A stretch of 64,000 nt of DNA, taken from IMG/VR virus record IMGVR_UViG_3300028569_002417, positions 124,001 through 188,000 of that record, one strand, 5' to 3'. The stretch's first letter is position 1. Every line of letters starts with the position of its first letter. Shown one piece after another: positions 20,902 through 60,007 of the stretch. The position numbers and the translations under genes were made by a program. The notes beneath the pieces were generated by a model. The model did not search any database. It worked only from the letters and a program-made list of their open reading frames with translations, and was not told the DNA's origin.

Positions 20902-21195
20902 CTATTTTTTAGCCTCTTTTGCCATAAGCCTTATAATGTCTTCCAAAGTACCATCTCCACTCGATATTTTATCTTTCACTTGCATCTGAACATCATCATT
21001 CAAATCCCTAAACTCGCCCAAAACTTCAAGAGAACTAATTAAATTTTCTGGAGGTTTCCACATATTCAAAGACGTTGATATATCATATTTTTCAGATTTA
21101 TCATTAGAATTAAGCTTTCCAATCACTAAATCCTTATAAAACTCATAATCTTTCTGATCATCTTCGAGCCAAATTCTAAAAGATAATTTATTCAT
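20902..21195 (-). CDS. hypothetical protein with capsid-targeting-like N-terminus
   Basis: MNKLSFRIWLED. Confidence 0.75.
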   Translation of the reverse strand: MNKLSFRIWLEDDQKDYEFYKDLVIGKLNSNDKSEKYDISTSLNMWKPPENLISSLEVLGEFRDLNDDVQMQVKDKISSGDGTLEDIIRLMAKEAKK

Positions 21196-21243
21196 AATCG
21201 ACTTCCGGTAAATAGTATTGATGCTTGTTCATATATAGATTTA

Positions 21244-22056
21244 ATGAACAGATTGTCATTCTCTTACTGGCTAGTCAATGAAATGGCTGATTATGGATTT
21301 GAAGGCGTATCCAGTCAAATCATGGGCGGAACTGATATCATGAAAGGTGACGAACTTTTCAAAATAATCAAACCAAGCGTTATAATTAGTGAACTTTTGC
21401 AAATGCCTTCCTTAGGACAACTTGAAGGTGTTCAACTTTATAATGATGAAATTCAATGGGGAACTGAACCCGGAGCACTAAAAATACAAATGTCTCCTTT
21501 AGGTTCCATGAGAGTGGTAACTAGAAGATTAACCAAAGACCTAGAAGGCAATAATGCTTGGGTTTGCAAAAAAGTTCATCCAATTAACGATTATAAAGAC
21601 CAAGACCATGAATTAAAAATAGCAAATCATGTCTATGAGAACTTAACAAAAATTAATGAAGAAGATATTGATTCACCAGATAAAGATTACAACGAAATTG
21701 AACGACTTGCACAAAAATTGTGGTATACAACTAAAAAGCAACATCCTTCTTACATTATGTTTCCAACACAGTTAAGGAAACAGGATGAAAATTATTACAA
21801 GCTTGTCTATGAATTCAGAGGCCAAGGTGTTGGATCTCCATATAACGGAAAAACTGGAAGGGCTGAACAGTTCGACATTGATTTGATCTACTATCCGAAA
21901 AAAGGCATGATTAGATGCTTTGGCTACGATATTGACAGTAGCTCTAGAGAAAGAAAGTTTTATGTTCAGCCTTCTGAGTGGGATGAAATGTTTTCCCCAA
22001 AGCAAGAAGACAACGATATAGTTGAAAATATTGTTAAACTTTTCTTGCAGTACTAA
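21244..22056 (+). CDS. hypothetical protein with capsid-targeting-like N-terminus
   Basis: MNRLSFSYWLVNE; ATATATAGA 4 nt before ATG. Confidence 0.8.
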   Translation: MNRLSFSYWLVNEMADYGFEGVSSQIMGGTDIMKGDELFKIIKPSVIISELLQMPSLGQLEGVQLYNDEIQWGTEPGALKIQMSPLGSMRVVTRRLTKDLEGNNAWVCKKVHPINDYKDQDHELKIANHVYENLTKINEEDIDSPDKDYNEIERLAQKLWYTTKKQHPSYIMFPTQLRKQDENYYKLVYEFRGQGVGSPYNGKTGRAEQFDIDLIYYPKKGMIRCFGYDIDSSSRERKFYVQPSEWDEMFSPKQEDNDIVENIVKLFLQY

Positions 22057-22072
22057 ATTCTCAGCATATAAT
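22045..22072 (+). promoter_or_regulatory. sigma70-type promoter for pyrB
   Basis: TTGCAG, 16 nt, TATAAT. Confidence 0.45.
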
Positions 22073-22107
22073 TAATTGTCAAGCAAAAAAAATTACGAGA
22101 TGAACAA

Positions 22108-23040
22108 ATGCGTCATTTCCTGTCTATTTCCGACTTCACTAAAGATCAAATTGAAACTGTTTTAGAAATTGCGACAGACATTGAAAAGAATTGGGAATTT
22201 TGTCGCCAAATGAACAACAAATGTATTTCTTCGTTTTTTGCAGAACCTTCTACTAGAACCAGATTTTCATTCGAGAGAGCAATGCATTGGCTTGGAGGAA
22301 GATGTGTCACAGCTGCTGATGCATCTTCAAGTAGCAGTTTAATCAAAGGCGAAAGTCTCAAGGACACATTTCGCACTCTTGGTCAGTATTCTGACGCTAT
22401 CATTATGCGTCATGGTGATTCAAGCTGGCCAGAAATAGCAAGAGCATATTCTCGTGTTCCAGTAATTAATGCAGGAAGTGGATCTGGAGAACATCCAACA
22501 CAAGCACTTCTTGACCTTCATACAATTAAACAAAAATGGAAAGATGTCAGTAATCTCAAGGTTATGTTGTGTGGAGATCTTAAAAACGGAAGAACAATAC
22601 ACAGTCTTATTGAACTTCTTCACATTTATGGTTGCAAAATATATTATTGCGCTGCCACTGATCATGCAGATTGTGATTTGAGCATACCTGAAAAATACCT
22701 TGCAAATATTCCTTGTAAAAATGTTGAAATATGTGACGCAAATGACATTCTTCCAGAAATCGATGTCATTTATATGACCAGAATCCAAAAAGAAAGATTC
22801 AAAGGTGTCAGTGGTTCTCTAGATTTCTTTAAGATTGACAAAACCAATATCAATAAAATCAAAGAAAACGCTGCTATTCTTCATCCTCTTCCTAGAAACG
22901 AAGAAATTAGTGAAGATATAGATGATGATTCTCGTGCTGACTATCACGAAAGACAAGTCAGAAATGGTCTTTATATAAGAACTGCTCTTTTAGATTATAT
23001 TCTTTACACAAGTCCTTTACACAGATACTACAGATCATAA
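22108..23040 (+). CDS. pyrB: aspartate carbamoyltransferase catalytic subunit
   Basis: FFAEPSTRTRFSFE, HPTQALLD, GDLKNGRTIHS, YMTRIQKER, HPLPR. Confidence 0.95.
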   Translation: MRHFLSISDFTKDQIETVLEIATDIEKNWEFCRQMNNKCISSFFAEPSTRTRFSFERAMHWLGGRCVTAADASSSSSLIKGESLKDTFRTLGQYSDAIIMRHGDSSWPEIARAYSRVPVINAGSGSGEHPTQALLDLHTIKQKWKDVSNLKVMLCGDLKNGRTIHSLIELLHIYGCKIYYCAATDHADCDLSIPEKYLANIPCKNVEICDANDILPEIDVIYMTRIQKERFKGVSGSLDFFKIDKTNINKIKENAAILHPLPRNEEISEDIDDDSRADYHERQVRNGLYIRTALLDYILYTSPLHRYYRS

Positions 23041-23052
23041 TCATAAAAACAA

Positions 23053-23799
23053 TTAATTGTTTTCTAAAGGGAATAACTGACGGAATTTTTGCTCAACATC
23101 TTTGTTGATGCATGGCAAATAAACTTTGATGTCGAAATTAATTTTTTTATAATCATCTTCAGTGAAGATTGATTTCATGAATGGTGAAATAGCAATGTAA
23201 TATGGAGATATTTTAGCAAGGTTTATCCAACGGAAAATATTATTGTTGATATAACATTCTCGATATTTTTCAATTGTCAGTTCGGAACCGAATGTTTTAA
23301 CTAAAAATTCTTTTGTCTTTTCAATTCCATCAATTGCTTTTTGGAATCCGATTCCACTTGCAACAGATTCTGCTGGTTTATTTTTGACTGAATCGTATCT
23401 TTTCTTCCAAAGCTTCCATCTTTTCCAAGCTTTTTCACCAACTAGACAATTTGGGTCAATAAGAGGATGATCTTTGCCAGAATTGATATATTTGAGAACT
23501 TCTAACTGAGCACGGATATAAAGTGGATATTCATTATTCTCAAGAATTCCCTGAGTTTCTCTTGCAAGCTTATATGCTATTTTGAATATAAGAGACTTTC
23601 TAGGGTCACCCTTTCTCATTGTTGAGTGACGATAATCAGGAAATGTTTTTCTGCTTTGTTCAAGCCACATTGCAGAAAGATTGCAAGCTTTTGCCTCAAG
23701 ATCGTCCATATTGTACTTTTCAACTGCATCTAAAAGCCACATGTAGTCATCCTCTTTTTTTTCAGACTTCATGATACTCCTTTGAATTTGTGAAAGCAA
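23053..23799 (-). CDS. hypothetical protein
   Basis: 248 aa ORF filling the interval; no motif recognised. Confidence 0.8.
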   Translation of the reverse strand: MLSQIQRSIMKSEKKEDDYMWLLDAVEKYNMDDLEAKACNLSAMWLEQSRKTFPDYRHSTMRKGDPRKSLIFKIAYKLARETQGILENNEYPLYIRAQLEVLKYINSGKDHPLIDPNCLVGEKAWKRWKLWKKRYDSVKNKPAESVASGIGFQKAIDGIEKTKEFLVKTFGSELTIEKYRECYINNNIFRWINLAKISPYYIAISPFMKSIFTEDDYKKINFDIKVYLPCINKDVEQKFRQLFPLENN

Positions 23800-23811
23800 G
23801 GTATGTATTAA

Positions 23812-24699
23812 ATGAAAATAGCATTTTGCCCATTAGTTAGTCGTGATATGGACAAGGCAATTCGTGCCACAAATTCTTGTCGTAATCAATTTCCAACCGA
23901 ATCCATTGAAATAGAAACAGTTGCAATTATCAATTCTCAGAATCAAGAATTTGTTTCTCAGTTTTCAGAATGGTGTGAAAAAGAGAATGTCAAATATAAA
24001 ATTACTCAGTCAAATGGTACTCCGAGTAAGGGAAAAAATTCTGTATTAAATTTTTTACAAAACTCAAATTATGATGGTCTGAGTCTTACTGATGGAGACG
24101 ACCTATTTTACCCAACAGGTGCAATTCAAATTGAAAAACATATGAAACATCACCCCGGAACTGATGTTTTGATTGTTAAACCTGCCGATCATGTTTCAAA
24201 TGAAAAAACAAATACTTCTAAGGAAGTTGGAGAAAATAAATATGCAGTATGCTGGGGTATGAATGTTGTTAATCTTGGATATAAATATGGACCCGGAAAG
24301 CACGATATATTTACATCTGGACACAAAGCAGCAAGAAATTTAGGTGGACATGTCTTTTATAGCAAAAAATTAAGCAATATGATAAGATATGACGAAGAAC
24401 AGGTTTTAGGAGAAGATTTACTTCTTGAATTTAATCTTCTTAAACTTCATCAACAAAATAAAATATCATTTTGGTTAAGTTTTGCTAGTGATGTTCAGAT
24501 GTTAGACAGAACAAAGCAAGAAAGCATACAAAATCTTAAGAATGAAAGTTTAGGTAAAATTTGTTTTGAAAGATTGATTAAAAAAGTAAAAGAAATATTA
24601 CCTGAAGATAGAAGTTCATTTAATGAATTGCCAGTAGAGTTTCCCGAAATTATTTTTAATCATGATCGAAAAATTGAATGGTTGAAACAAGTCTTTTGA
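23812..24699 (+). CDS. GT-A fold glycosyltransferase-like protein
   Basis: SNGTPSKGKNSVL, TDGDD DxD-like motif, GEDLL. Confidence 0.7.
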   Translation: MKIAFCPLVSRDMDKAIRATNSCRNQFPTESIEIETVAIINSQNQEFVSQFSEWCEKENVKYKITQSNGTPSKGKNSVLNFLQNSNYDGLSLTDGDDLFYPTGAIQIEKHMKHHPGTDVLIVKPADHVSNEKTNTSKEVGENKYAVCWGMNVVNLGYKYGPGKHDIFTSGHKAARNLGGHVFYSKKLSNMIRYDEEQVLGEDLLLEFNLLKLHQQNKISFWLSFASDVQMLDRTKQESIQNLKNESLGKICFERLIKKVKEILPEDRSSFNELPVEFPEIIFNHDRKIEWLKQVF

Positions 24700-24723
24700 C
24701 ATTCCCATAAAAGATGGTATAAT
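24696..24723 (+). promoter_or_regulatory. consensus sigma70 promoter with extended -10
   Basis: TTGACA (24696-24701), 16 nt, TATAAT (24718-24723), TG at 24715-24716. Confidence 0.8.
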
Positions 24724-24729
24724 AGATAT

Positions 24730-25150
24730 GGCAGTCCCAAGCTTTGGCGTGAAAGGTCTCGTACTACCTTGAATGTTGAAGTTGCTAAACCTGTGAGGCT
24801 CTCACCAAGAGCGGGTCTTTGTAGTTGTTTCTACAACAAATGCTGTAACGGGCAGCATTGTTCTCACAAGCAACATAGGTCAAGCCAGATAGCATCGATG
24901 CTGACTTCTATGACTATAGTGTATCCCACTAGCAAACACTCATGTCATAGACTATCTGGTTTTAAGATTGTTGCAAAAGAAAGTACGCTACTCTTCATCA
25001 CCACTAATCTTTTTGCTGGAGTAAGTAAGATTAAAGAACAAAAACAAAGCTTAAACGCTAAATTTTTGCTCTACTAATCTTGTTTACTCAATAAGTCATT
25101 ATTCTTAATGATTTATACAGTAATAACCATTAGGGTCAGCATCCCGTTCT
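24730..25150 (+). ncRNA. candidate large structured non-coding RNA, class unknown
   Basis: Starts just after a consensus promoter; at least 9 nested helices plus long-range complementarities; no credible ORF; 3' end uncertain. Confidence 0.6.
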
Positions 25151-25296
25151 GGAATTTGATTGTAAATAAAAGTTTCTCAAAAATATTTTCATGTTGTTAA
25201 TGAAGAATTTGTTTAGTATGACATTTGTAAATCCGTTCATCAATGAATGAAGGGATAAGGCTAGAAGGCTCAAAATTGACTTAGGAGTGATTATCT

Positions 25297-26631
25297 ATGA
25301 ACTTTGAGTCTCTGGCCAAGTTGCTTACAGAAATCGACCACAAGACCCTATTCTTGCGATTTAATCCTGAGGTTCTTGATTTCACAGACAAGGAATCGTC
25401 TTGTGAGCTTCAGTTCTTTATTCCTGATGGTCGAATCTTCAAGATTGAGTTGAAAGATGAGACTATGCCTTTGATTCTAAGCTTCTTGGGTATATCTTTG
25501 TTTGAAAAAGATTGCAAAATATTTACTTGGAATTGGAAGTGTTTTGCTTCTTATGTTTTTGCTAAGAAGAACAAGTTTTATGACATAAAGGCTTCTATTG
25601 TTGATATCAAGATAATTGAGTCATTTAGCGGTATAAAGAAGAATGCTCCTGAAAGTTATGTTGAGGCTTTCAATAGAATAAAGAATTTAGTTTCTTCTGG
25701 TTTGTGGAAGGAAAGTGAGAATATTTACAAGAACATTCATCTTCCTTTGATGACAACAGTTATACCAGCATTGGAGAAGATAGGTATTGTTGATTCTTCT
25801 TTGCATTCTAAGGTTCATGCTTATTACGAGATTGATGGGCAGGACAATGGTCGATTGAAGTGTTTCGGTGCCTTCAAGAATTCTTATGTTCCTCACACAA
25901 TGGGATCTGAACTGAAAGAAGTTTTGAGGCCTGTTGGTTACGATAATTTTTTTATGAGTTTTGACTTTAAGGGGATGGAAGTATTTGTTTTGGCGCATTT
26001 GAGTAAGGATCGAAATTTATTGAGACTTTGCGATCAGGAAGACATATATCTTTCCTTGTATAGGGTTTTAATTGGACAGGAGAAGGAAAAAAATGATAGG
26101 GAATTGGCAAAAAAATGTTTTTTGCCGGTTATATATGGACAGTCAGCCCGATCACTTTCTTTGAGATGTGGTTTGGCGGCTGATGTGGCCGAAAAAGTGG
26201 TGGAACGAATTAGTTCTTTGTTTCCTGCTGCTATTTCATTTGTTGCCGATTGCGAAAGCAAAGTTAAAAAAGATGGATATGCAAAGGATTTCTTCGGTAA
26301 GAGAAGAACAAACTTTGAGGTTGGGAAGGAATACCTTGCCAGAAATTTTGCAGTGCAGTCTCCTGCTGCGACGATATGCCTAGAGAAACTTATCAGTTTA
26401 TATTTTTGTTTGCAAAAACTCAATGAGTCATTGAAAGATAAAGCTGAAATTGCTTATACTGTTCATGACGGATATGTTGTTTATGCCACAAAGGAAAACT
26501 GGAAGCAAGTTTACAAAAAATGTATGGATGCTTTGACTAGTGAATCTGAGTTGTGTCCCGGCCTTAAGCTGAAAGTTTCATGCAAAGGAGGACGCAATCT
26601 AAATGATCTAAAGGTTATAAAAAACGGCTAG
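25297..26631 (+). CDS. polA: divergent family A DNA polymerase, thumb deleted, exonuclease degenerate
   Basis: DNGRL, motif A SFDFKGMEVFVLAHLSKD, motif B RELAKKCFLPVIYG, NFAVQSPAA, motif C TVHDGY. Confidence 0.85.
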   Translation: MNFESLAKLLTEIDHKTLFLRFNPEVLDFTDKESSCELQFFIPDGRIFKIELKDETMPLILSFLGISLFEKDCKIFTWNWKCFASYVFAKKNKFYDIKASIVDIKIIESFSGIKKNAPESYVEAFNRIKNLVSSGLWKESENIYKNIHLPLMTTVIPALEKIGIVDSSLHSKVHAYYEIDGQDNGRLKCFGAFKNSYVPHTMGSELKEVLRPVGYDNFFMSFDFKGMEVFVLAHLSKDRNLLRLCDQEDIYLSLYRVLIGQEKEKNDRELAKKCFLPVIYGQSARSLSLRCGLAADVAEKVVERISSLFPAAISFVADCESKVKKDGYAKDFFGKRRTNFEVGKEYLARNFAVQSPAATICLEKLISLYFCLQKLNESLKDKAEIAYTVHDGYVVYATKENWKQVYKKCMDALTSESELCPGLKLKVSCKGGRNLNDLKVIKNG

Positions 26632-26642
26632 AGGATTAAGAA

Positions 26643-27194
26643 ATGCTTGATATTGTACACAATTTCCCCATTACTGAAGCTGAATTTTTTGATTTGGATA
26701 AGAAGTTTTCAAAGCTTTGCTGGCATGCTGCTCATGAATTGAAGAAAAAGAATACAAACAATAATTTTCTTGATGATGCAGAAGACATCAAACAAGAATT
26801 ACAAATGAGTATGCTTCGTGCTGGAAGTTATTATAAGCGTCAGGTTTATATCGAGAAATGCTTTGAAATTGCCAAGAATTATGTGAGTGATCAATTCATC
26901 ATGAAGGTTCTTAAAGAGCTTGAGAATCTTTGGAGCAATAGAACCAGACATGGTGCAAATAGGCAGAAGTATGGTCATTTCCAAGAAAAGATACTTGACA
27001 GAATAATTAACAAGTTTGTGCCTAAAGAACATAGGCCTAAGAAGGATGCTCCTTTGAAGATTGACAGTAAGTTTACAACATATTGCAAGGCAATTGTGTG
27101 GAACGGTCAGAAGAGCATGGGCAAAAAGATTACCCGTGAAAAATCGATTCGTAGCGGTATGGTTTCACTAAGCGAGTTTGATTTCTTACATTGA
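26643..27194 (+). CDS. sigma70 region-2-like protein, possible phage sigma factor
   Basis: DAEDIKQELQMSMLRA (2.1/2.2-like), SKFTTYCKAIVWN (2.3/2.4-like); no region 4 HTH. Confidence 0.5.
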   Translation: MLDIVHNFPITEAEFFDLDKKFSKLCWHAAHELKKKNTNNNFLDDAEDIKQELQMSMLRAGSYYKRQVYIEKCFEIAKNYVSDQFIMKVLKELENLWSNRTRHGANRQKYGHFQEKILDRIINKFVPKEHRPKKDAPLKIDSKFTTYCKAIVWNGQKSMGKKITREKSIRSGMVSLSEFDFLH

Positions 27195-27210
27195 GATTAA
27201 TATAATATCT

Positions 27211-27309
27211 TGAGCAGCATAGTTCGCCGTCCTGACCATATTTTATAAAATACATTTAATTAATTTACATAGTCCGATCTAATGGCTGAGTTTAACGGCG
27301 TGCTGCTCA
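27211..27309 (+). ncRNA. candidate ~100-nt hairpin RNA or origin-like inverted repeat
   Basis: TATAAT at 27201-27206; TGAGCAGCA/TGCTGCTCA and GCCGT/ACGGC arms; T-run after 27309. Confidence 0.45.
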
Positions 27310-27378
27310 TTTTTTTCAAATCAATCTGGATCATTCCATATTTTGTGCTATTCTGGTGTGAGCCTATAGGAATCATAG

Positions 27379-28908: not shown

Positions 28909-28910
28909 AA

Positions 28911-29084: not shown

Positions 29085-29086
29085 TC

Positions 29087-30299: not shown

Positions 30300-30301
30300 G
30301 A

Positions 30302-50168: not shown

Positions 50169-50211
50169 TTTTTTTATTCCTCATATGGTCTTTCAATACA
50201 TATATAGAATT

Positions 50212-50667
50212 ATGCGGTACAGTTTGAGTGGATTTAAGAAATTCTTTGAAGAGATGGACCCATCTCAAGAGAAAGATATTTCATCTAGCGGAGGCGGTAA
50301 AAAGCAAGATTATTGGGATTCATTGGAAGACGAAGAAAAGCTGACATGGGATGATATTAAGAATACATTCCAGTCAGAGCCATGGGTTTCATCTCACTTC
50401 CCTCTTGGTCAGGGAAAGAAAGAAATTAAATATAAGTTGCAACCATGGAAGATTGTGAAGGGTTCAATGGGGCCATCAGGAGCAGATATAGAACTTATTC
50501 ATAACCAAAACGATAAGAGTTATTTGAAGGGAAATAAATTAAATAAAGGTTATAGAGACACAAAGCGATATTTTGTAAAGAGAAAAGATTTACAGGATTT
50601 CCAGACAGGTGGTTGGCAACCAGCAGTTCAGGGAGCAGCAGGAGGCGGTGGCGCTCCACCGATGTAG
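50212..50667 (+). CDS. hypothetical protein with capsid-targeting-like N-terminus
   Basis: MRYSLSGFKKFFEE; ATATATAGA 3 nt before ATG 50212. Confidence 0.75.
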   Translation: MRYSLSGFKKFFEEMDPSQEKDISSSGGGKKQDYWDSLEDEEKLTWDDIKNTFQSEPWVSSHFPLGQGKKEIKYKLQPWKIVKGSMGPSGADIELIHNQNDKSYLKGNKLNKGYRDTKRYFVKRKDLQDFQTGGWQPAVQGAAGGGGAPPM

Positions 50668-50668
50668 T

Positions 50669-50842
50669 ATGAAATTTAGTGAATGGATTAAATTAAGAGA
50701 AGTTGGAACAAGCACAGCTAGTGTTGCGAATGTTCCCATGAGACTCTTTGGTGGTGCTGTGCAAAGGATGTACCCAGAGCCAGTCATTATCGGTGGAAGA
50801 GAAGTTAAACATAAGAAAAAGAAGAAAGATCATAATTCTTAA
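50669..50842 (+). CDS. small basic protein with capsid-targeting-like N-terminus
   Basis: MKFSEWIKLRE from ATG 50669; Lys-rich tail. Confidence 0.65.
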   Translation: MKFSEWIKLREVGTSTASVANVPMRLFGGAVQRMYPEPVIIGGREVKHKKKKKDHNS

Positions 50843-51275: not shown

Positions 51276-51294
51276 TCATTTAGAGATTACCGTC

Positions 51295-51323
51295 TTTACA
51301 GTTGAAATCAATTAGTTTATAAT
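51295..51323 (+). promoter_or_regulatory. sigma70-type promoter for thyX-hldE
   Basis: TTTACA, 17 nt, TATAAT. Confidence 0.65.
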
Positions 51324-51354
51324 TTGACAGGATCACATTTCAAGAGGTTCTGTC

Positions 51355-52263
51355 ATGTCTGACATTATGGATTCTGTTGTCAATAAGACAATTAATTGCC
51401 TTGATAAAGGGCATGTGACTCTAGTCGATGTAATGCCAAGGAATGTTCCTGAAGGTAAAACTGCTGATTATGCCATTGTTCAGGCTGCGAGAGTAAGCTA
51501 TGGAGATGGAACTAAAACTGTCAATGAAGACCGTGGACTTATTCGTTACCTTCTCAGGCACCAACATACCACTCCATTAGAAATGGTAACCCTGAAATTT
51601 CATTGCAAGATGCCTATCTTTGTTTGCCGTCAATGGGCAAGGCACCGTATGAGTTCAACAAATGAAATTTCAGGTCGTTATTCGGTTATGAAAGACGAAT
51701 TTTATTTTCCTCAGGCCACTGATCTAAGATCCCAGTCTCAAATAAATAAACAAGGTGGAGAAGGCACTGTTGAGGAAATAACAGCTAACTATTCAGCAGG
51801 TAAAATTGCCGATAATTGCAATTCAGCTTATGATTTTTATGAATATATGATTCATGCAGGTGTTTCAAGAGAACAGGCAAGAATGGTTCTCCCTCTCAAC
51901 TTATACACAGAATTTTATTGGAAAATTGATCTTCACAATCTTTTTCACTTTTTGGCGCTAAGAGCAGATAGCCATGCCCAAAAGGAAATCAGAGTTTATG
52001 CAGAAGCAATTATTGAGATTTTACGCCAAATTGTTCCAGTAGCACTTGAAGCATGGGAAGATTATCATCCTATGCGTGGAGCAATAAAACTCACAAGACT
52101 CGAAACAGAAGCACTAAAAAGCTACATCCAGAAATTTCAATCTTTTGCTCATGCCGAATTCCAACATGTTGTCAGCGACAACAAGCGTGAACAGTCTGAA
52201 TGGATTGAGAAAGCCAAGATTCTTGGAATCAATGTTCCTCCGATAAAACAGAATGAGGCTTAG
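51355..52263 (+). CDS. thyX: flavin-dependent thymidylate synthase
   Basis: AARVSY, HTTPLE, RQWARHR...NEISGRY, EQARMVLP, LRADSHAQKEIR. Confidence 0.95.
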   Translation: MSDIMDSVVNKTINCLDKGHVTLVDVMPRNVPEGKTADYAIVQAARVSYGDGTKTVNEDRGLIRYLLRHQHTTPLEMVTLKFHCKMPIFVCRQWARHRMSSTNEISGRYSVMKDEFYFPQATDLRSQSQINKQGGEGTVEEITANYSAGKIADNCNSAYDFYEYMIHAGVSREQARMVLPLNLYTEFYWKIDLHNLFHFLALRADSHAQKEIRVYAEAIIEILRQIVPVALEAWEDYHPMRGAIKLTRLETEALKSYIQKFQSFAHAEFQHVVSDNKREQSEWIEKAKILGINVPPIKQNEA

Positions 52264-52356
52264 GATCAACTAATTGAAAGCCATGACTGGCTATGATTTG
52301 TAATGTTAGAACAATCATTGTGATCATGGCTTTCTCCCTTGTGGACATTATAACAG

Positions 52357-53748
52357 ATGAAAAGCATTTTGCAATTTCTCGAAAGTGATAAAAAAGGCCA
52401 AACTCTTAATATTGGAGTAATTGGCGATGCAATGATTGATGAATACTATGATGTTAAAATTAAAAGAATAAGTCCTGAATGCCCAATTCCCATCATGCAT
52501 AGCAAAGAACATGAACCAAAAATTCTTCCCGGCGGAGCCGCAAATGTCGTTCATCAATTCAAGAATTTTAATGCTAAAGTCAATCTTGGTTGCTTGTTAG
52601 ATTATAAAGCGAAAAGTATATTTGAAGATGCAAGAATCAATACTGATTATTCAGTAAATATTGCTCATGATATTTCTAGAAAGAGAAGATATTACAGCGA
52701 ACATATTCAGGTTGCAAGAATTGATATAGAAAAAAATAATTATGGTTTTAATGATGATGATTTGTTCTTAAAAACCGAATCTTTGTTTGATAAATTTGTT
52801 TTGAATGATTTTCAGGCTGTTATATTTTCAGATTATGGCAAAGGAATATTTAATTTTTTCAAAAATGAATATCTTAAAAAATTCCCAATCACAGTTGTTG
52901 ATCCAAAAAATGGTGATTTGACTCGTTGGCGTGGATGTACTGTTCTGAAACCAAATCAAGAAGAAGCATTGAAATTAAGTGGTAAAGATAATGTTCGTGA
53001 TGCTGGTCTTTATTTATCAGAATTATTGGAATGTTCTGTTGTCATTACTCAGGCAGCACAAGGAATTAGTGTTTTTGAAAAAGGTGGAATAACTGAGATA
53101 AGACCAACAGTAAGTCCTGCTGTTGCCGAATCTGTAATTGGCGCTGGAGATGCCTTTATAACATTCTTGACAATGGCAATGTGTAGGGGATTTTCTCTTC
53201 AAGAATCTGCTGATATTGCATTTAAGGCTGGAACATTATACGTTTTGAATAAGCATAACAAACCTTTAGATAGATTTTCCATTATTCACTCTATTGATTC
53301 AATTGGTGCAAAGGTTATACCTTATGATGAAACTAATATGTTTTGCAATAGAGATTATAAATTGGTTTTTACTAATGGCTGTTTTGATATCATGCATATG
53401 GGGCATATTGATTGCTTGAAATTTGCCAAATTACAAGGCGACAAACTTATGGTTGGATTGAATTCAGACGAGAGTGTCTCAAGATTAAAGCCCGGAAGAC
53501 CGATCATGTCGGTTAAGGATCGTGCCTCTGTTCTTGCAGCATGTGAATATGTTGATTATATTGTTGTTTTTGATGATGACACACCATTAGAACTTATCAA
53601 AAAGATCAGTCCTGATGTTTTAGTAAAGGGTGCAGATTATAAGGAAGAAGATGTTGTTGGTTATGGAATTGTCCCAGAAATAAAAAGATGTCCTCTTGTG
53701 GAAGGCATCAGCACAACAAACATTATTGAAAAAATTAAAAAACTTTAG
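52357..53748 (+). CDS. hldE: bifunctional heptose-7-phosphate kinase / heptose-1-phosphate adenylyltransferase
   Basis: GDAMIDEY, GGAANV, SDYGKG, PNQEE, GAGD; FTNGCFDIMHMGH, GLNSDESV, KGADY, STTNII. Confidence 0.9.
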   Translation: MKSILQFLESDKKGQTLNIGVIGDAMIDEYYDVKIKRISPECPIPIMHSKEHEPKILPGGAANVVHQFKNFNAKVNLGCLLDYKAKSIFEDARINTDYSVNIAHDISRKRRYYSEHIQVARIDIEKNNYGFNDDDLFLKTESLFDKFVLNDFQAVIFSDYGKGIFNFFKNEYLKKFPITVVDPKNGDLTRWRGCTVLKPNQEEALKLSGKDNVRDAGLYLSELLECSVVITQAAQGISVFEKGGITEIRPTVSPAVAESVIGAGDAFITFLTMAMCRGFSLQESADIAFKAGTLYVLNKHNKPLDRFSIIHSIDSIGAKVIPYDETNMFCNRDYKLVFTNGCFDIMHMGHIDCLKFAKLQGDKLMVGLNSDESVSRLKPGRPIMSVKDRASVLAACEYVDYIVVFDDDTPLELIKKISPDVLVKGADYKEEDVVGYGIVPEIKRCPLVEGISTTNIIEKIKKL

Positions 53749-55004
53749 CGTCTCCTTCTTCTTTTCAGATTATCTTCTGCTTGTTCAATTGTCAAAACAC
53801 CAGAAAGAACTAGAAGCTGCTCACTCATGTTCAAGCCGGGATGGAATCTTCTTTCTAATTTGGAGCCTTGAGTAAGGCCTGTGCTAATTGACGTTGCGTC
53901 ATCAGGATTGACATTTACAATACCTCCTGACAACATAGTATCAAATTTGGTGTCACCAGTTTGAGGCATCGTTGTTCTTGTATTTGCTTGATCCGCTCCT
54001 GCTTTTAATTCTTTCACAATCATGGCATTTTTTGCAATATAATTTGCAACATCTTGTGGGCTTGCGGTTTTTGCATTAGGTAGTTTTTCTTCAGGAATGT
54101 TGTCTCTAAACATCTTCAAAATTGGTTGTTGATTTTTTGCAAGTGAACCTTTGACAGGTTTATTTTTTTCATCTCTTTCCATGGTTGCTGTTTGAGTGTT
54201 TTCATTGCCCAATAGTCTCAAAACATGTTGTGAAACTTGTTCTTCACTTAAATCAAATAGATTGCTTTTTGCATCGCCACCTTCTGATGGAACTGACCCT
54301 TTTTCTGCGGCAATAGCTAAATGTACTGCTTTCAATGACTTTAGGGCGCTTGGCAAACCACTTATTATTTTTGCGCTAATTTGTTGATCTGGATTAAAAC
54401 AACAGAATTGTGACCATCTATGATGTCCATCAATGATATGATATTTGTCTCCGACTTTTGAAACTATTATAGCTCCAGCAGCATTAGGGTTTGTTCCCTT
54501 GAGCATATCTGGCGTGCTTCCGTATTGGTCTTTTATTCCGGCATCAACTGAATTTTCTAGAAAAACTTCTGCTTGGGTTGGAACAACTGATCTAATACTA
54601 ACATTTGCACTTGTTACTGATAGCTTATCATTTTCGGAACCATCTTTAATTGTGGCTTGAAATTTTGGATTTGATATATACTTGTTAAGCTGTGACCAAA
54701 AGTTTCCTAAGTCGGTGCCATCATTCATCATATTCTTGAGAATTTCTAAATATTTTGGGTCAGCAGGTGCTTTTCCATAACCGCTGACAGAAGAACCGGC
54801 AGGTTGATTATTTGGTTGATTAATTGTTAGTGGGTTTGCATTAGCGGTAGAGGCTTTATTGGAAGTATTAGTGCCTGTAAAACTATATCCACTTGGAACA
54901 GAGCCGCTATTGTTTGGAATTTGGGTTATTGGCCCCTGCATAGATTGATTGTTTATTTCCTCTTCTTCTTTCATTTGCTGATAAAACTCAAAAAATGTCT
55001 TCAT
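53745..55004 (-). CDS. ParB/Srx-like domain protein with capsid-targeting-like N-terminus
   Basis: MKTFFEFYQQMKEEEE; VVPTQ, IIVS, IIDGHHRW. Confidence 0.8.
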   Translation of the reverse strand: MKTFFEFYQQMKEEEEINNQSMQGPITQIPNNSGSVPSGYSFTGTNTSNKASTANANPLTINQPNNQPAGSSVSGYGKAPADPKYLEILKNMMNDGTDLGNFWSQLNKYISNPKFQATIKDGSENDKLSVTSANVSIRSVVPTQAEVFLENSVDAGIKDQYGSTPDMLKGTNPNAAGAIIVSKVGDKYHIIDGHHRWSQFCCFNPDQQISAKIISGLPSALKSLKAVHLAIAAEKGSVPSEGGDAKSNLFDLSEEQVSQHVLRLLGNENTQTATMERDEKNKPVKGSLAKNQQPILKMFRDNIPEEKLPNAKTASPQDVANYIAKNAMIVKELKAGADQANTRTTMPQTGDTKFDTMLSGGIVNVNPDDATSISTGLTQGSKLERRFHPGLNMSEQLLVLSGVLTIEQAEDNLKRRRRR

Positions 55005-55016
55005 ATTATTTTCCTT

Positions 55017-55247
55017 TTATTTGCAAAAACAGTCTGTTTTTCCACATGATTCGCAGCAAGTGCAAAGATCGCAGCAAGAACCTTTTAATTCACAGCAACC
55101 TTCAACAGCACAACAGGAACAACCACATTGGCAAATGCATTTTTCGCACAAGCATTTTGTAGATGATTTTACAAAACCAGCGCAAATAAAACCTGTAATT
55201 ATAATTACAGCAATTGCTCCAAGTAACGAATCAATCCAATTAGACAT
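55017..55247 (-). CDS. membrane-anchored Cys-rich (metallothionein-like) protein
   Basis: 19 Cys in 76 aa by my count; SD AAGGAG; CTAAATA upstream at 55270-55276. Confidence 0.7.
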   Translation of the reverse strand: MSNWIDSLLGAIAVIIITGFICAGFVKSSTKCLCEKCICQCGCSCCAVEGCCELKGSCCDLCTCCESCGKTDCFCK

Positions 55248-55299
55248 GTTTGCTCCTTTAATATATAATTATTTAGGCTATTACAGTTATAATTACATT

Positions 55300-55551
55300 A
55301 TGAGTAAGAAAAAAATTAACAAAAAATATGTTAAGTTGTCTTATGGAAAATGCCCTTCTTGACTGCCACAAAATAATCGAAGGAAACAAGAAGGAAGGAC
55401 CGGGTTATGTGAAAGAAAATGTAGTTGTTTGCTGCGCTCTTTGTCACAGAAAATACATGCAAATATAATTAAAATCGATAGATATTACACAACAACTTTA
55501 GGAAAACAGATTTTGCACTATTGGCTCGATGGAGTTGAACATTGGGATTGA
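55300..55551 (+). pseudogene. disrupted small HNH endonuclease
   Basis: Three frames join as MSKKKINKKYVKLSYGKC / ALLDCHKIIEG...YVKENVVVCCALCHRK / IHANIIKIDRYY...HYWLDGVEHWD*. Confidence 0.7.
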
Positions 55552-55561
55552 TATATAGATC

Positions 55562-55750
55562 ATGCTTACTTTTCAACAATTTCTAGAATCTAGAAAAAGT
55601 GCCACAGGAACTTTTGGAATGGGTACTGGACAGAGTCCAGCAAAAATCATGGCCAGAGGAGCAGTTAGTCCTGCAAGTCCTACTCGTCCAAAATATCATG
55701 GATTAAGTGTTGCAAAATCTTATCCTGTTGCTAAAATTGGTAAGGTTTGA
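55562..55750 (+). CDS. small basic protein with capsid-targeting-like N-terminus
   Basis: MLTFQQFLES; ATATATAGA 2 nt before ATG. Confidence 0.75.
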   Translation: MLTFQQFLESRKSATGTFGMGTGQSPAKIMARGAVSPASPTRPKYHGLSVAKSYPVAKIGKV

Positions 55751-55780
55751 TCGGTAATGGCTAAAGATAGAGGGTTTTTT

Positions 55781-56191
55781 ATGCGTACATTTCATGAGTT
55801 TTGCGAGATTAAGAAAAATATTTTGAATGAATCTGATCTGGATCATTATGCACAAATTAGTGATGAAGCATTAGATAATGCTTACCATTATGGGCGTTCA
55901 AAGCCGGGCACTTTTGGCTACGAAGCCAACAAGGGAAGTGCTAAGTTTGCTTTAGATCTAATGAAAACAGGCGAGACAGATATAGAAATGATTGCAGATG
56001 CTATCCACAAAGGCTGGGCAAGTGTCGCAACTACATACGATGATCCAATTTACGCTGTCAAGCCTGAGAAAAAAGCCAATAGATTAAATTTGGCTGATAC
56101 ACATTATAGTCAGCTTTCTGAAGAAGAAAAAGAAAAGGATAGAGTTGTCGCAAGAGCGTTGTTACAGGCCTATCAAGCAGAAAATGAATGA
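55781..56191 (+). CDS. RyR-domain protein with capsid-targeting-like N-terminus
   Basis: MRTFHEFCE; AIHKGWA...YSQLSEEEKEKDRVVAR. Confidence 0.75.
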   Translation: MRTFHEFCEIKKNILNESDLDHYAQISDEALDNAYHYGRSKPGTFGYEANKGSAKFALDLMKTGETDIEMIADAIHKGWASVATTYDDPIYAVKPEKKANRLNLADTHYSQLSEEEKEKDRVVARALLQAYQAENE

Positions 56192-56222
56192 TGGAATTAA
56201 TATACAGGCACTATGTTAAGGC

Positions 56223-56816
56223 ATGGCTGTATCAAGTATTGGAAACGGACTTACTGTTGTAATTGAATGTGATTTTTTACCACATCATGAGTGGATGTCC
56301 TTTCTGGCATATTGGTCACTTAAAAATAACTTGCCAGAAGCAAAAGTGATAGTTACATGTGTCAGAAGGGACATGAATATTGATATATTAAATTGGCCAA
56401 GGAAGTGTAACGTCCCAATTCTCTTCCACAAGCCAATGGATCAAGATAATCTTAGTCATTTTGTTGCAACTCATCCAAAAATAAAGGTAACACAAGATTT
56501 TGTCTTTATAAAACCTACAATTGTTTTTCTTCGTGATTTTGAAGAATCTTCTACAAATCCTGATGTTTTTGAAAGAGGAAAAAATATTTCTGAAATACAA
56601 GGAATTGTCTCAAAAATAAATTCTGAAAATCCTACCATTTGCTGTGATTATTCTGAAGGATGGGGTAAGTTTGTGACTTCAGATTGGATAAATAAAAAAA
56701 GCATACCCTTCTCGTCAGTTAATTTTGTCGATGCAGATATGAGCTTAAACGAGAATAGGCTTGCTAGGCTTTGGAAGTCAGCTACGAAAATATACCCAAG
56801 TGTATCAAGGGGATAA
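56223..56816 (+). CDS. hypothetical protein
   Basis: 197 aa. Confidence 0.75.
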   Translation: MAVSSIGNGLTVVIECDFLPHHEWMSFLAYWSLKNNLPEAKVIVTCVRRDMNIDILNWPRKCNVPILFHKPMDQDNLSHFVATHPKIKVTQDFVFIKPTIVFLRDFEESSTNPDVFERGKNISEIQGIVSKINSENPTICCDYSEGWGKFVTSDWINKKSIPFSSVNFVDADMSLNENRLARLWKSATKIYPSVSRG

Positions 56817-56817
56817 A

Positions 56818-57096
56818 ATGAGACATTTCAATTACGACGACAATGATGAATTTCACGAAGACATTGATAAGTTTTTCGATAATGAAGATTCAGGCGGCTA
56901 TGACGATCTCATTAAAGAAGAATTTGCTCTTCAAGAAGCAAGACTTGATGTTCAACATCGTGAAATCAACTATAAGATGATGAGAACAGCAATCAGGTTT
57001 TGTGAAAAAACTTTTCTTTGGTCTTTTTATTCAATACCTACTCGTTTGAAGATGATCTCTGAAACTTATAAAAGACTTCGCAAATTAGAGGAATGA
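56818..57096 (+). CDS. acidic hypothetical protein
   Basis: ATG 56818 after SD AGGGG. Confidence 0.7.
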   Translation: MRHFNYDDNDEFHEDIDKFFDNEDSGGYDDLIKEEFALQEARLDVQHREINYKMMRTAIRFCEKTFLWSFYSIPTRLKMISETYKRLRKLEE

Positions 57097-57097
57097 A

Positions 57098-57433
57098 ATG
57101 CCAACTTATCAGTTTTCCTGTAAACAATGCAATACCGTTTATGAGGAACTTTGTTCACATGATCCTAAGGGCAAATATAAAGGCGTTATTTGCCCAAAAT
57201 GTAAAAGTAAATCAAAAACAAAATTGATGTCAGCTTGTAGTTATCAATTTTCAAACCCAGAAGGTACTGATCGCTGGAATAACGAATCCAGCGGTCATGA
57301 TTATAGATTCAATCATAATTTGCCCAAGGTTCTGTCAGAAAGACAACGTGCCGAAGAAGCTGGTAAAAATCCAAATCCCTATAATAATATCAATGATATT
57401 GCTAATAATGACGCTTGGGGCGATGTTAAGTAA
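57098..57433 (+). CDS. FmdB-family zinc ribbon protein
   Basis: MPTYQFSCKQC...CPKC. Confidence 0.85.
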   Translation: MPTYQFSCKQCNTVYEELCSHDPKGKYKGVICPKCKSKSKTKLMSACSYQFSNPEGTDRWNNESSGHDYRFNHNLPKVLSERQRAEEAGKNPNPYNNINDIANNDAWGDVK

Positions 57434-57437
57434 TTAT

Positions 57438-58526
57438 TTATTTTCTTTTCAGCAAGCGACTTTCCTGATAAAACCATTCTTTGAAATTTAACTTTTGTTC
57501 TGCCATTTTGCCTAAATTTCTCTGACCGACTAACGATCTTATTGATTTAGCATATCCTTCAGGATCTCTATTGTAACTGGGATTTGAGAATGGTAAATTT
57601 TCTTTTCTTGGCTCATTACTCATTGGAACGCCTTGAGTAGGATGATATCGTACTTGTTTAACTAAAGAAGCAGCACCACTCATTACGTCTTTTATTGGAA
57701 CAGTTCCTAAATCAGGTGTTGAAACATATACTTCTAACGATCTTTTTGTTTCTAAAAGTTTTCTTCTCTCTGCTTGCAGATTGTCTATGCTCTGATTGAT
57801 TTTTTCGTCAATGTTTAGACCTCTTGGGTCTTTTTTTCCTAATTGTTTCTCAAGATCAAGTACCCACTTGTCCAATTCACTAATTCTATCAAATTTGGTT
57901 CTGTCTAAACTTATAATTTGATCATATTCATTTTGTAAATTTTTTATACTTGATCTGATGTGTTCTTCGCTGTCGTATTTGAATTCTTTATTTTTTAATT
58001 TCTCTTCTTGAGAAGATATCCATTTTAGTAATTCTTGTGTTCTTATATATTTTTCTTCATCCAAACCTGATTTAATCTTATGATTATCTAAGCTTATAAG
58101 CTTTTCATTTATCAATGCGTTTAAGCAAGGAATTAGTTCTTTTTTCAACATGTTGCCAGAAGCAGATTTTTCGTCCCAAAAACTTACAATAATTTTATTT
58201 ATACTTCTATTACCATAGCCAATTCTTCCCATCACCATATGATCATATATGTCTTTATTGTTTCGATAGCTTGCTGCTAAATCTTTTTTTCTATCTTTTA
58301 CAGAAGCTAATCCTTTTTTTCTTAAATCTTTTTCAAGCTCATCTTCAGATAGTTCTCCATATATCTTTTTAAGTTCGTTAAGAATAAATTCATTATCTTT
58401 AATAATATGGACGTGAGTGTCGGAGGATATTTTACTGTAAAATAACCTATTCTTAAACCATATAAAAGTAATCATGTTGTCATAATCATTATGGTAATCA
58501 TACATTTCATCAGGACTTTTGTACAT
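57438..58526 (-). CDS. hypothetical protein, paralog of 58613-60007
   Basis: MGRIG...IIVSFW...LIPCLN; coiled-coil insert; C-terminal LNFKEWFYQES. Confidence 0.8.
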   Translation of the reverse strand: MYKSPDEMYDYHNDYDNMITFIWFKNRLFYSKISSDTHVHIIKDNEFILNELKKIYGELSEDELEKDLRKKGLASVKDRKKDLAASYRNNKDIYDHMVMGRIGYGNRSINKIIVSFWDEKSASGNMLKKELIPCLNALINEKLISLDNHKIKSGLDEEKYIRTQELLKWISSQEEKLKNKEFKYDSEEHIRSSIKNLQNEYDQIISLDRTKFDRISELDKWVLDLEKQLGKKDPRGLNIDEKINQSIDNLQAERRKLLETKRSLEVYVSTPDLGTVPIKDVMSGAASLVKQVRYHPTQGVPMSNEPRKENLPFSNPSYNRDPEGYAKSIRSLVGQRNLGKMAEQKLNFKEWFYQESRLLKRK

Positions 58527-58612
58527 AATTTTTTCCTTAAATTTCTCTTATACGATCTGGCGTTATAGCATAAATAACGGGTCCCAAATTTCTTCCTAAT
58601 TTATCTTTTCTT

Positions 58613-60007
58613 TCACATTAATGCTATCTTTTCTGGAGTAGTAATATGACCCTGAGCTCCTAGCAGATCGTTTGTGATAATTATTTGTTTTCCGTTAAAA
58701 ATGCCGCCGGATAATGTCCCATTCCTTTTCATTTCATAGAATGCTTTGAATTTTTCTTGAGAATAATTTCCGTAAAATGTGGCTAATGGCCTATTTTTAA
58801 GTTCTTTTGCGAGTTGTTCTTTATCACATTTTTTTGCAAAATCAGAATTTTCAATTACTTTTTCAACAGATAAGCCATCAGGAACAATTCTGCCAACAAT
58901 ATCTTCATTGCCCCCTCTTGATAGCGCATACCAAGCTTGCTGCGCTCTTTTTGCAGCACCATATGAAATTTTGTCAAGATAGGTGATGTAGTCGGAATGA
59001 CTCATATTATATCTGGGTGCTATTCCTAAACCATCAGTAGTTTTTTCACCGTTTATTTCCTTGTCGCCATTAAAGTAAAAAAATGATTTGTGAGAATTTG
59101 CCATCTTGCCATCAGATATTGCTGATGGATTAAGTAGTTGTTTTTTGAACAACTCTACAATAATTTTTTTCATATATGAGCTTATTTCCCAATCTTCCAT
59201 TTTTTCAAAATTTACTTTTTCCGTTTGAATATTATTGTCAGATGCAGGAATTGCACTAGGTGCGTAGCCAAGTTTTTTACCTAGTTCTTCTTTTTCAGAT
59301 GGCGTCATAACTTTTCCATTTGGCCATCTACCTTGATGAAAAGCAAGCATTTCTGCCGTTTTATCTTTTTCATCTTCTTTGTTATAAGTCATTGATCCGC
59401 CACCAATGTAATAAGTGATCGGACGCAATGGTTCATTTGGTATTGCAACAAATATATTTTCAATTTTACTAAAAAATACCTTGCCACCTTGATTAACCAT
59501 ATCGTTCAGGCAAGGTATAAGAAGAGTATCATATAGTTTTTTGCCCGTATTTCTCAATCCTTTTTTATGTAAATAGCCACTTTCTTTTTGCTGTTCATCA
59601 GAATTACTATTCCAAAAAGAAACAATTGTTGCATATTCTTTATTGTCTGCTCCTAATTTTGAAAGAGCTTTTAATATTGGTTCATTTTTTTGATAAGGAT
59701 TATCTTTTATATGCTTTTTATAATTTTCTAAAGGAAGATAAGAATATCTTCCAATTAAGCAAAATTGCATCAAATCATCATTAAAGTCAGCCCACAAATC
59801 ATCGCCATATTCTTTTTTTAATGATTCGTAATTGTAAGCCATGATATCTTGGTGCGTTCCTCCTTCATAGTATTTATTTCCTATGGTGTAAACAAATCCT
59901 TTTTTTCTCATTCCTTCTATATCAAAAGACAATGCTTCGAGTGTGTGAGGGCTTATATTGCTGCTTTCCTCACTTAACAACCATTTTCTAAAACTTAAAT
60001 TAATCAT
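58613..60007 (-). CDS. hypothetical protein with capsid-targeting-like N-terminus
   Basis: MINLSFRKWLLSEE; IGRY...IVSFW...LIPCLN. Confidence 0.8.
   Translation of the reverse strand: MINLSFRKWLLSEESSNISPHTLEALSFDIEGMRKKGFVYTIGNKYYEGGTHQDIMAYNYESLKKEYGDDLWADFNDDLMQFCLIGRYSYLPLENYKKHIKDNPYQKNEPILKALSKLGADNKEYATIVSFWNSNSDEQQKESGYLHKKGLRNTGKKLYDTLLIPCLNDMVNQGGKVFFSKIENIFVAIPNEPLRPITYYIGGGSMTYNKEDEKDKTAEMLAFHQGRWPNGKVMTPSEKEELGKKLGYAPSAIPASDNNIQTEKVNFEKMEDWEISSYMKKIIVELFKKQLLNPSAISDGKMANSHKSFFYFNGDKEINGEKTTDGLGIAPRYNMSHSDYITYLDKISYGAAKRAQQAWYALSRGGNEDIVGRIVPDGLSVEKVIENSDFAKKCDKEQLAKELKNRPLATFYGNYSQEKFKAFYEMKRNGTLSGGIFNGKQIIITNDLLGAQGHITTPEKIALM

Follow-up and report, generated by a model that had tools for sequence, protein, structure and literature searches.

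What could cause a series of otherwise unrelated proteins of a single phage to begin with nearly the same peptide? This question arose from a 64,000-nucleotide stretch of DNA (hereafter the window, whose numbering is used below unless the contig or another record is named), which corresponds to positions 124001–188000 of a 225,527-bp linear virus contig in IMG/VR (IMGVR_UViG_3300028569_002417) with a guanine-plus-cytosine (GC) content of 36%. The initial annotation had noticed about nine proteins in it whose shared N-terminus resembles the capsid targeting sequence (CTS) of phage T4. This tag consists of Met, 1–6 further residues, F/Y-x-x-F/W followed by a hydrophobic residue, and then Glu, and it heads 25–31 of the ~258 genes of the contig. 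By analogy with T4, we consider it probable (roughly two chances in three) that the shared N-terminus is a T4-kind CTS employed on a much larger scale, by which proteins would be docked, trimmed after Glu, packaged and ejected with the DNA.

Translation of the open reading frames (ORFs) reproduced each of the eight N-terminal peptides noticed at the outset, and revealed that the ORF at 57438–58526 (–) indeed ends in a further copy of the tag (...GKMAEQKLNFKEWFYQESRLLKRK-stop). The figure of about nine tagged proteins was right for these places yet turned out to be an undercount, since the set extends over the whole contig (~12% of genes). A curated list comprised 31 tagged contig genes and one doubtful enzyme, so that the nine are the window's share of a contig-wide set. 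It should be mentioned that the genes (~258 on the contig) were called with a crude codon-usage caller and that some starts were picked by the presence of the tag or of the box described further below; the resulting uncertainty in the number of tagged genes is bracketed by the counts of 25 and 31.

The frequency of the tag was compared with chance in several ways. The pattern F-x-x-[FW]-x(1-5)-E occurred within the first 15 residues of 19 of the 258 genes, while ~1.8 would be expected from internal 15-residue windows, and it was found at 11 of 1148 internal Met-anchored windows (Fisher p = 4e-8). Shuffled N-termini, a control that the initial annotation had suggested, pointed in the same direction (mean of 3.7 and maximum of 10 over 1000 shuffles, versus the 19 observed). 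A first position weight matrix (PWM) over-fitted to Met at –3 and lost the true member at 21244, and an untrained pattern (^M.{1,6}[FY]..[FW][LIMFVYC].{0,5}[ED], applied at candidate ATG starts) was used in its place. This pattern retrieved 25 genes from the contig versus 2.7 expected (Poisson P = 2e-16), 28 versus 3.5 expected from the relative G001 (343 kb, with a GC content of 56% compared to the 36% of the contig), and 7 versus 1.8 expected from T4, with ipII and ipIII among the matches. T4 gene 61.1 (NC_000866 18966–19130 (–), L097, 54 amino acids), which starts with MKTFKEFIKEDM and resembles the MKTFKEF of ipI, was caught by the same pattern. The proteins behind the tag are indeed unrelated, as had been claimed, because an all-against-all BLASTP comparison of 32 of them with the tag removed yielded only one pair (contig 49687/49908) with similarity at E < 0.01.

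Targeting of proteins to the T4 head by an N-terminal signal has been textbook biology since 1994–1996, and the CTS of the T-even internal proteins (IPI, IPII, IPIII and other Ips) is said to have been described by Repoila and colleagues in 1994 and by Mullaney and Black in 1996. In the T4 genome (NC_000866), ipII and ipIII start with MKTYQEFIAE followed by A, and ipI starts with MKTFKEF. Mutational work on this signal, as reviewed, assigns targeting mainly to residues 4 and 7 and processing to residues 8 and 10, with Asp at position 10 blocking processing and allowing targeting, and large enzymes fused to the signal, such as beta-galactosidase, get packaged (PMC9026906). The internal proteins of T-even phages have only this signal in common and were identified by it, and Ip1–3 of T4 are injected inhibitors of restriction systems (PMC3012670; PMC12373910). 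Citing Repoila et al. 1994, PMC12373910 adds that in T-evens the shared signal marks variable ip genes.

The tags of the contig align with this scheme, and the likeness to the T4 CTS stood up to inspection: the aromatics occupy the positions at which T4 has its targeting residues (4 and 7), and a hydrophobic residue and Glu follow where its processing residues (8 and 10) lie, although a canonical [LIVM]-x-E is contained in only about half of the tags. Specifically, 17 of 32 tags had the first aromatic at residue 4 and the others at residues 3–8, with the second aromatic 3 residues further on and a hydrophobic residue behind it. The first Glu lay at residue 8–15 in 29 of 30 tags (the remaining one, at residue 7, had its core mis-anchored by the script), and its P3 position was hydrophobic in 27 of 30. 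The most T4-like tag (MISFIEYLAE-A) belongs to a flavin mononucleotide (FMN)-reductase-like protein encoded outside of the window, at contig 22250–23116 (–) (L003:10250–11116), with a start-abutting box; it would represent a packaged enzyme.

Several observations indicate that selection acts on the peptide. The conserved Phe residues of the tags were encoded by TTT (15) and TTC (14) alike, Ser before Phe by both AGY and TCN codons, and Leu after it by five codons. In the G001 orthologues (56% GC), F-x-x-[FW] was retained while neighbouring residues changed, as is illustrated by the pairs MNRLSFSYWLVNE (21244–22056) versus MGNNMQFREWF and MMSFSQFIEIRE versus MKNFNEWRYERP. Because synonymous codons vary and the aromatics are kept in these GC-rich orthologues, the tag is selected as a peptide and not as a nucleotide signal. 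Moreover, orthologues that have diverged to 22–56% protein identity retain exactly both aromatics, which argues for purifying selection on the peptide. Among 31 members of the 21244–22056 family, F6 was invariant and M1, W9 and E13 were conserved in at least 90%, so that these residues match the fold's core in their degree of conservation. In the 53745–55004 family, the tag MK[ST]F.EF[YW].Q..E was likewise retained, and the linker behind it (rich in P, A, Q and N) was hypervariable in length and composition. Independently called metagenomic homologues begin with the same peptide.

AlphaFold models of two families show how such proteins are predicted to be built. For the 270-amino-acid family (21244–22056; predicted local distance difference test score of 81.6), the model contained a helix at residues 6–14, low confidence up to residue ~40 and a confident domain at 44–270, with no significant fold match in the PDB. 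For the 419-amino-acid family (53745–55004), a helix at residues 4–17 was followed by disorder at 18–77 and by a confident domain from residue ~80 onwards. In both modelled families, the tagged protein is thus predicted to begin with a short helix of low confidence, which a disordered linker joins to a confident globular domain. The composition of the linker was slightly more disorder-prone in tagged than in untagged proteins (0.61 versus 0.55, p = 0.02), which is a weak difference.

The cargo itself remains largely without recognizable domains, as most tagged proteins had no Pfam or PHROG match, and a G001 homologue was found for 8 of 32 tagged versus 94 of 226 untagged genes. The domain encoded at 53745–55004 had been called ParB-like, and this designation was borne out by the invariance of Q144 and D192-G-H-H-R-W197 in 25 homologues, the latter in keeping with the DGxxR-type nucleotide-binding motif of the ParB/sulfiredoxin (Srx) superfamily, and by Foldseek, in which the ~45 highest-ranking of the 50 matches listed were nearly all to ParB, Noc, Srx, Atu1540 or free serine kinase. 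These matches reached probabilities of up to 0.99 with a best E-value of only 1.5e-3 over ~90 aligned residues, and a PDB profile search gave E = 0.004 to free serine kinase. The call is based on fold and motif because Pfam ParBc_2 stayed sub-threshold for this gene (E = 0.09) and ParB_N (PF02195) had no hit anywhere on the contig.

The contig was further examined for the head genes that a CTS would serve. In relatives with a 62–75% identical sheath, a Peptidase_S77 gene (E = 1e-26 to 1e-29) adjoins a Gp23 gene (E = 1e-88), and for G001 the portal, maturation protease and major head protein were confirmed with PHROGs. The proteases of these relatives shared 28–34% identity with T4 gp21, and the residues at T4 positions H85, S140 and D168 were invariant. 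Searching IMG/VR with the protease gene retrieved three contigs (L137, L138 and L139) that match contig positions 5–1821 at 95% nucleotide identity, which places a T4-type head module just beyond that left end. The order in L138 is portal, a small opposite-strand tagged gene (MDKIMKTFQQYLNLKE), a 591-amino-acid gene, S77 protease (L138:9995–10681), a 300-amino-acid gene in the scaffold position (L138:10683–11585), and capsid. Its portal, protease, scaffold-like and capsid genes lie 3–6 kb upstream of the match to the contig start; the capsid is 84% identical to that of G003, and the first genes of the contig follow ~3 kb on.

Tagged genes clustered around the head module in both G001 and L138. 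Alignment of L138:16242–19666 with contig 5–2225 moreover revealed a 1.2-kb insertion in L138 that carries a different, unrelated tagged gene (MLKFNEFIKEKYE, 270 amino acids); at 95% identity, this reads as strain-level cargo variation, as is known for T-even ip genes. The gp23-type capsids of the lineage start with MNAN..FLNE-A (L138:11621–13057; G001 248780–250216; L069), which may be a 10-residue propeptide of the capsid's own, with an F-L-x-E ending as in many tags. The propeptide of T4 gp23 (65 residues) is much longer than this putative one.

Many tagged genes also stood out by the sequence preceding their start codon. In 15 of 32 cases, the ATG lay 3–6 nt behind the end of a promoter-like box (CTAAATA, GTAAATA, CATAAATA or ATATATAG) and a Shine-Dalgarno sequence was missing, a combination shown by 6 of the 226 remaining genes (odds ratio 32, p = 3e-11), and the same association was found in G001 (14 of 28 tagged versus 17 of 381 others, p = 2e-10). 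The distance from TAnATA to the ATG peaked at 4–5 nt (18 cases on the contig and 31 in G001, versus 0–4 in each other bin), with mostly C or A as the preceding base, and the C/A-TAnATA box at this fixed distance preceded ~8% of genes, which lack a Shine-Dalgarno sequence. Within the intergenic DNA of G001, the box was 4.3-fold enriched. Late promoters of the T4 family are read by gp55, and the contig has a gene for a gp55-like late sigma factor (contig 72707–73252; phrog_234, E = 4e-7). The T4 late promoter consists of a TATA box of 8 bp (–13 to –6), and the Aeh1 variant has a/g-C at –13/–12 (xCTAAATA; PMC2988020). The C/A-TA-n-ATA box of the contig fits this variant of the T4-family late promoters, from which it differs in its fixed spacing of 4–5 nt to the ATG. 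Because a box ending at –6 puts +1 on or beside the A of the ATG, transcripts starting there would be leaderless, which suggests that the box-preceded tagged genes (about half of them) give rise to leaderless mRNAs from a T4-late-like promoter, as judged from the position of the box.

In terms of mechanism, the amphipathic N-terminal helix with its two aromatics three residues apart would dock the protein onto the scaffolding core during prohead assembly, and the flexible linker would keep this helix apart from the folded cargo and let a gp21-type protease reach its site. The prohead protease would then cut after a Glu located 8–15 residues from the start, freeing the mature protein within the head, where it would stay until it leaves with the DNA at infection. 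By analogy with T4 Ip1–3, the ~30 unrelated and mostly lineage-specific proteins would then constitute a large and fast-changing injected set.

Other explanations for the shared N-terminus were weighed against this head-targeting reading. Chance or an annotation artefact is practically out of the question: AT-rich N-termini, wrong starts and a loose pattern might have conspired, the more so since the gene calls were crude, several starts were chosen for the tag and the loosest patterns admit false members (e.g., the contig genes at 30374 and 212910), but the controls gave a ~nine-fold excess over three independent expectations with patterns not trained on the contig. Moreover, the excess repeats in the GC-rich G001, is absent from a cyanophage control and modest in T4, and independent homologue calls agree with the starts. 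It also seems highly improbable that the shared start is a nucleic-acid signal, with the first codons constrained by leaderless translation or by being the first part transcribed from an ATG-abutting promoter. This explanation would fit the 15 of 32 tagged genes with a box and no Shine-Dalgarno sequence, and the repetition of that association in G001, but conserved residues are free in their synonymous codons, the peptide is kept at a GC content 20 percentage points higher, and Trp (TGG) and the fixed i/i+3 spacing are sensible only at the protein level. Nor does the box explain the tag, since the other tagged genes bear the same peptide without a box (12 of them with an ordinary Shine-Dalgarno sequence), while the tag is missing from about half of the genes behind a box.

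A third possibility, very unlikely though slightly less so than a nucleic-acid signal, is that of a hitch-hiking recombination cassette, in which a mobile module of promoter and 5′ end was copied before many genes and the peptide has no function. Box and tag often occurring together, the 3′ remnant in the 57438–58526 ORF with 21 nucleotides identical to another tag, the insertion of a tagged gene that sets near-identical strains apart, and the existence of tag subfamilies (MN.LSF..WL and MK[ST]F.EFY.Q) would all agree with such copying. The tags nevertheless share no long DNA identity besides the one 21-mer and short promoter overlaps, and their aromatics are kept in diverged orthologues; shuffling and function are in any case compatible, as in the T-evens. 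Finally, the tag might serve another destination or partner and not be a head-core signal that the prohead protease removes; a different virion compartment (e.g., tail or baseplate), the membrane of the cell (bound by an amphipathic helix), a chaperone of the phage or a protein of the host come into consideration. We regard this as unlikely, albeit clearly less so than the preceding explanations. A predicted short amphipathic helix on a flexible tether would lend itself to docking of various kinds, a canonical [LIVM]-x-E is found in no more than about half of the tags, and some tagged proteins are very large or enzyme-like. Conversely, the conserved positions coincide with the T4 residues for targeting (4 and 7) and processing (8 and 10), the lineage possesses a matching set of protease, scaffold and capsid with tagged genes around it, and the ip genes of T4 score with the same pattern.

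A number of points weigh against the head-targeting reading itself. No gp21 or gp23 homologue was found on the contig by profile search or by tblastn with the proteins of relatives, nor was gp21 found on a near-identical 168-kb contig, and the link between contig and head module depends on 95%-identical overlapping metagenomic contigs and not on one continuous assembly. The position of Glu varies, some tags end in Asp (FMSKD, INIRD), and two tagged proteins of 946 and 957 amino acids are much bigger than the small internal proteins of T4. Matches of the sheath to cultured phages are distant (best 37% identity). Furthermore, the T4 late consensus in its exact form, TATAAATA, shows no enrichment on the contig (30 occurrences versus ~50 expected, mostly inside genes), for which reason the boxes were rejected as canonical T4 late promoters and the term T4-late-like was kept. 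The untrained pattern also yielded no excess in the cyanophage S-SSM7, which has an S77 protease (4 genes versus 2.7 expected, none of them convincing), indicating that the tag is a trait of the lineage and not a rule for all S77 phages. When all this is taken together with the foregoing, the head-packaging interpretation of the initial annotation is partly supported, namely with regard to the CTS likeness, the excess of tags, the head genes of the lineage and the ParB-like domain, and weakened by the variable putative cleavage site ([L/I]-x-E in only about half of the tags) and by the RyR domain (PF02026) that had been assigned to 55781–56191. The latter reached 20.7–20.8 bits (E = 5e-4), below the gathering cut-off of 27.4, and is a weak lead.

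Within the window, the first two tagged genes are arranged divergently, 48 bp apart. The gene at 20902–21195 (–) encodes 97 amino acids starting with MNKLSFRIWLED (F6, W9), as established by translation, scored 19.9 bits with the PWM and has no Pfam domain. Its neighbour at 21244–22056 (+) encodes the 270-amino-acid protein starting with MNRLSFSYWLVNE, a member of a conserved metagenomic family with 63 homologues, and is preceded by a TATATA box (21232–21237 (+), 6 nt 5′ of the ATG) and no Shine-Dalgarno sequence. Both proteins begin with MN[KR]LSF..WL and are unrelated in the remainder, suggesting a local duplication or inversion of the tag-coding 5′ end.

A tagged tandem is located at 50212–50842. 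Its first gene (50212–50667 (+), 151 amino acids) starts with MRYSLSGFKKFFEE, has a TATATA box 5 nt 5′ of the ATG (50201–50206 (+)) without Shine-Dalgarno sequence, and corresponds to a G001 orthologue starting with MKTTLAGFRRFLEDLE. The second gene (50669–50842 (+), 57 amino acids) starts with MKFSEWIKLRE, which contains an L-R-E site, and has the G001 orthologue MKLQFKEWLKLQE in the same arrangement. With its start 1 nt past the preceding stop codon, this second gene may be translationally coupled to the first, and both the pair and its arrangement are kept in G001 at ~46.1–46.6 kb.

Four further genes bear the tag towards the end of this region. The ParB-like protein at 53745–55004 (–) (419 amino acids, starting with MKTFFEFYQQMKEE) combines the tag with a long disordered linker and a domain of ParB/sulfiredoxin fold, and its gene has a Shine-Dalgarno sequence. 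The gene at 55562–55750 (+) encodes 62 amino acids starting with MLTFQQFLES (26.3 bits with the PWM) and has a TATATA box 4 nt 5′ of its ATG (55552–55557 (+)) and no Shine-Dalgarno sequence. The following gene at 55781–56191 (+), with the weak RyR match, encodes 136 amino acids starting with MRTFHEFCE behind the Shine-Dalgarno sequence GAGG, with an alternative ATG at 55757. The gene at 58613–60007 (–) encodes 464 amino acids starting with MINLSFRKWLLSEE; it is preceded by a TACATA box 5 nt 5′ of the ATG (60013–60018 (–)) and no Shine-Dalgarno sequence, and appears lineage-restricted, with homologues of 81–95% identity only and no Pfam or PHROG match. The doubtful enzyme is located at 52357–53748 (+) and is, according to Pfam, an HldE-like bifunctional enzyme (PfkB kinase and cytidylyltransferase) that starts with MKSILQFLES and has neither box nor Shine-Dalgarno sequence. 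It was not counted as a tag member, as Ile replaces the first aromatic, the strict pattern fails and the G001 orthologue starts with MIAEFLKRD. As a sugar kinase/nucleotidyltransferase, it represents an auxiliary metabolic gene of the window.

The C-terminal copy of the tag occupies 57438–57506 (–), where the 362-amino-acid ORF ends in MAEQKLNFKEWFYQESRLLKRK-stop. Over 21 nt it is identical to tag codons of the contig gene at 24044 (MNFKEWFYEIEE), and its sequence resembles the opening 22 codons of a tagged gene (MAEQKLNFKEWFYQES...) that was joined in frame and truncated. Possible origins are a scar of recombination or a propeptide at the C-terminus, and C-terminal propeptides are present in Alt and gp21 of T4. 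An IMG/VR search for diverged homologues of this ORF yielded only a 100% identical copy.

With regard to its origin, the contig was estimated to be ~52% complete (CheckV), from which a whole genome of probably at least 430 kb follows, and the source is probably a huge uncultured T4-related myovirus of which the contig represents about half of the genome. Its genes include those for a contractile-tail sheath (distantly related to T4-like sheaths) and for collagen-like tail fibres, as well as for a UvsX-like recombinase, a DnaB-like helicase and further helicases. No GenBank phage was matched by 10 kb of the window in a megablast search, and homologues in T4 or T4-like cyanophages were found for 15 of the ~258 contig genes only; with 15 such genes, a comparison of tagged genes with T4/cyanophage core genes was uninformative. 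The GC content of S77 protease-bearing loci in the lineage ranges from 33 to 58%. Two homologues of the 21244–22056 gene (P0034 and P0037) sit on metagenomic contigs of 602,679 and 462,616 bp, and judging by these lengths, complete genomes of the lineage may be megaphage-sized. Large phages that possess T4-like core genes were described in 2025 as aquatic 'moraphages' (PMC12619734). Elsewhere in the window, two large paralogous collagen-like tail-fibre genes, at 14348–18094 (–) and 18119–20539 (–) (1248 and 806 amino acids, with the common N-terminus MANQCNQSGTLRTEEELL), lie in a GC-rich (41–44%) and strongly skewed stretch.

Proteins injected with the phage DNA act ahead of any phage gene expression, with each of the three T4 internal proteins disabling one particular restriction system, and finding them normally takes virion proteomics of a cultured phage. 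If the tag works as in T4, injected proteins of uncultured huge phages could be listed from sequence only. The catalogue of ~30 mostly unknown folds, together with the ParB/sulfiredoxin-like and FMN-reductase-like proteins, would then be candidates for anti-defence or host takeover, and would form a rapidly exchanged arsenal that is the phage counterpart of an effector repertoire defined by a secretion signal. It would in addition help to explain the non-DNA contents of giant capsids, and foreign proteins could be packaged with a second targeting peptide that has diverged from the first. It is possible, if a little short of an even chance, that a widespread lineage of huge phages uses the CTS as a general loading signal on at least a tenth of its genes, many of them leaderless, and perhaps on 50 or more per phage. 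In the literature searched, neither an expansion of the CTS repertoire nor leaderless late promoters were described for huge T4-related phages, and a late-type box at a fixed 4–5 nt from the ATG was likewise not found described for T4-type phages, although absence is not proof. What is new here is the occurrence in a distant, uncultured and huge lineage, the ~ten times larger number of tagged genes than in T4, the large or enzyme-like cargo, and the coupling of the tag to a start-abutting box.

Other phages that fill their heads with protein offer instructive comparisons. Loading of the Dar (defence against restriction) proteins of phage P1 follows a hierarchical, protein-specific order, and the head is of a different lineage. 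Dar resembles the tagged set in being head-packaged anti-defence cargo (which for the contig would hold by analogy), and differs in that no one short peptide is spread over dozens of proteins. Incorporation of this anti-defence cargo needs N-terminal regions as well as head morphogenesis (PMC9024508; PMC12810830). The phiKZ-like giant phages (phiKZ, 201phi2-1 and SPN3US) likewise package many proteins, which a gp21-related protease cuts after Glu (PMC5694885; PMC9026906). Their propeptides, however, often exceed 100 residues, lack any short tag in common and undergo cleavage at A/S/G-x-E, whereas the tag of the contig is short and located at the extreme N-terminus.

With the internal proteins of T4 and the T-evens, the tagged set shares a short (10–19-residue) N-terminal peptide common to otherwise unrelated proteins, a head set of gp21-family protease, scaffold and gp23 in the lineage, and variable accessory genes of which near-identical strains differ in one; the ip genes of T4 itself are caught by the same pattern. 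Differences concern the number of tagged genes (~30 on half a genome, versus 3 in T4 and ~10 or more across the T-evens; PMC12373910), the preference for Trp at the second aromatic, and the varying distances from Met (residue 3–8) and to Glu (residue 8–15). Moreover, the putative cargo of the contig includes proteins of 400–950 amino acids and enzyme-like domains, and in about half of the tagged genes, unlike in T4, a promoter-like box abuts the ATG.

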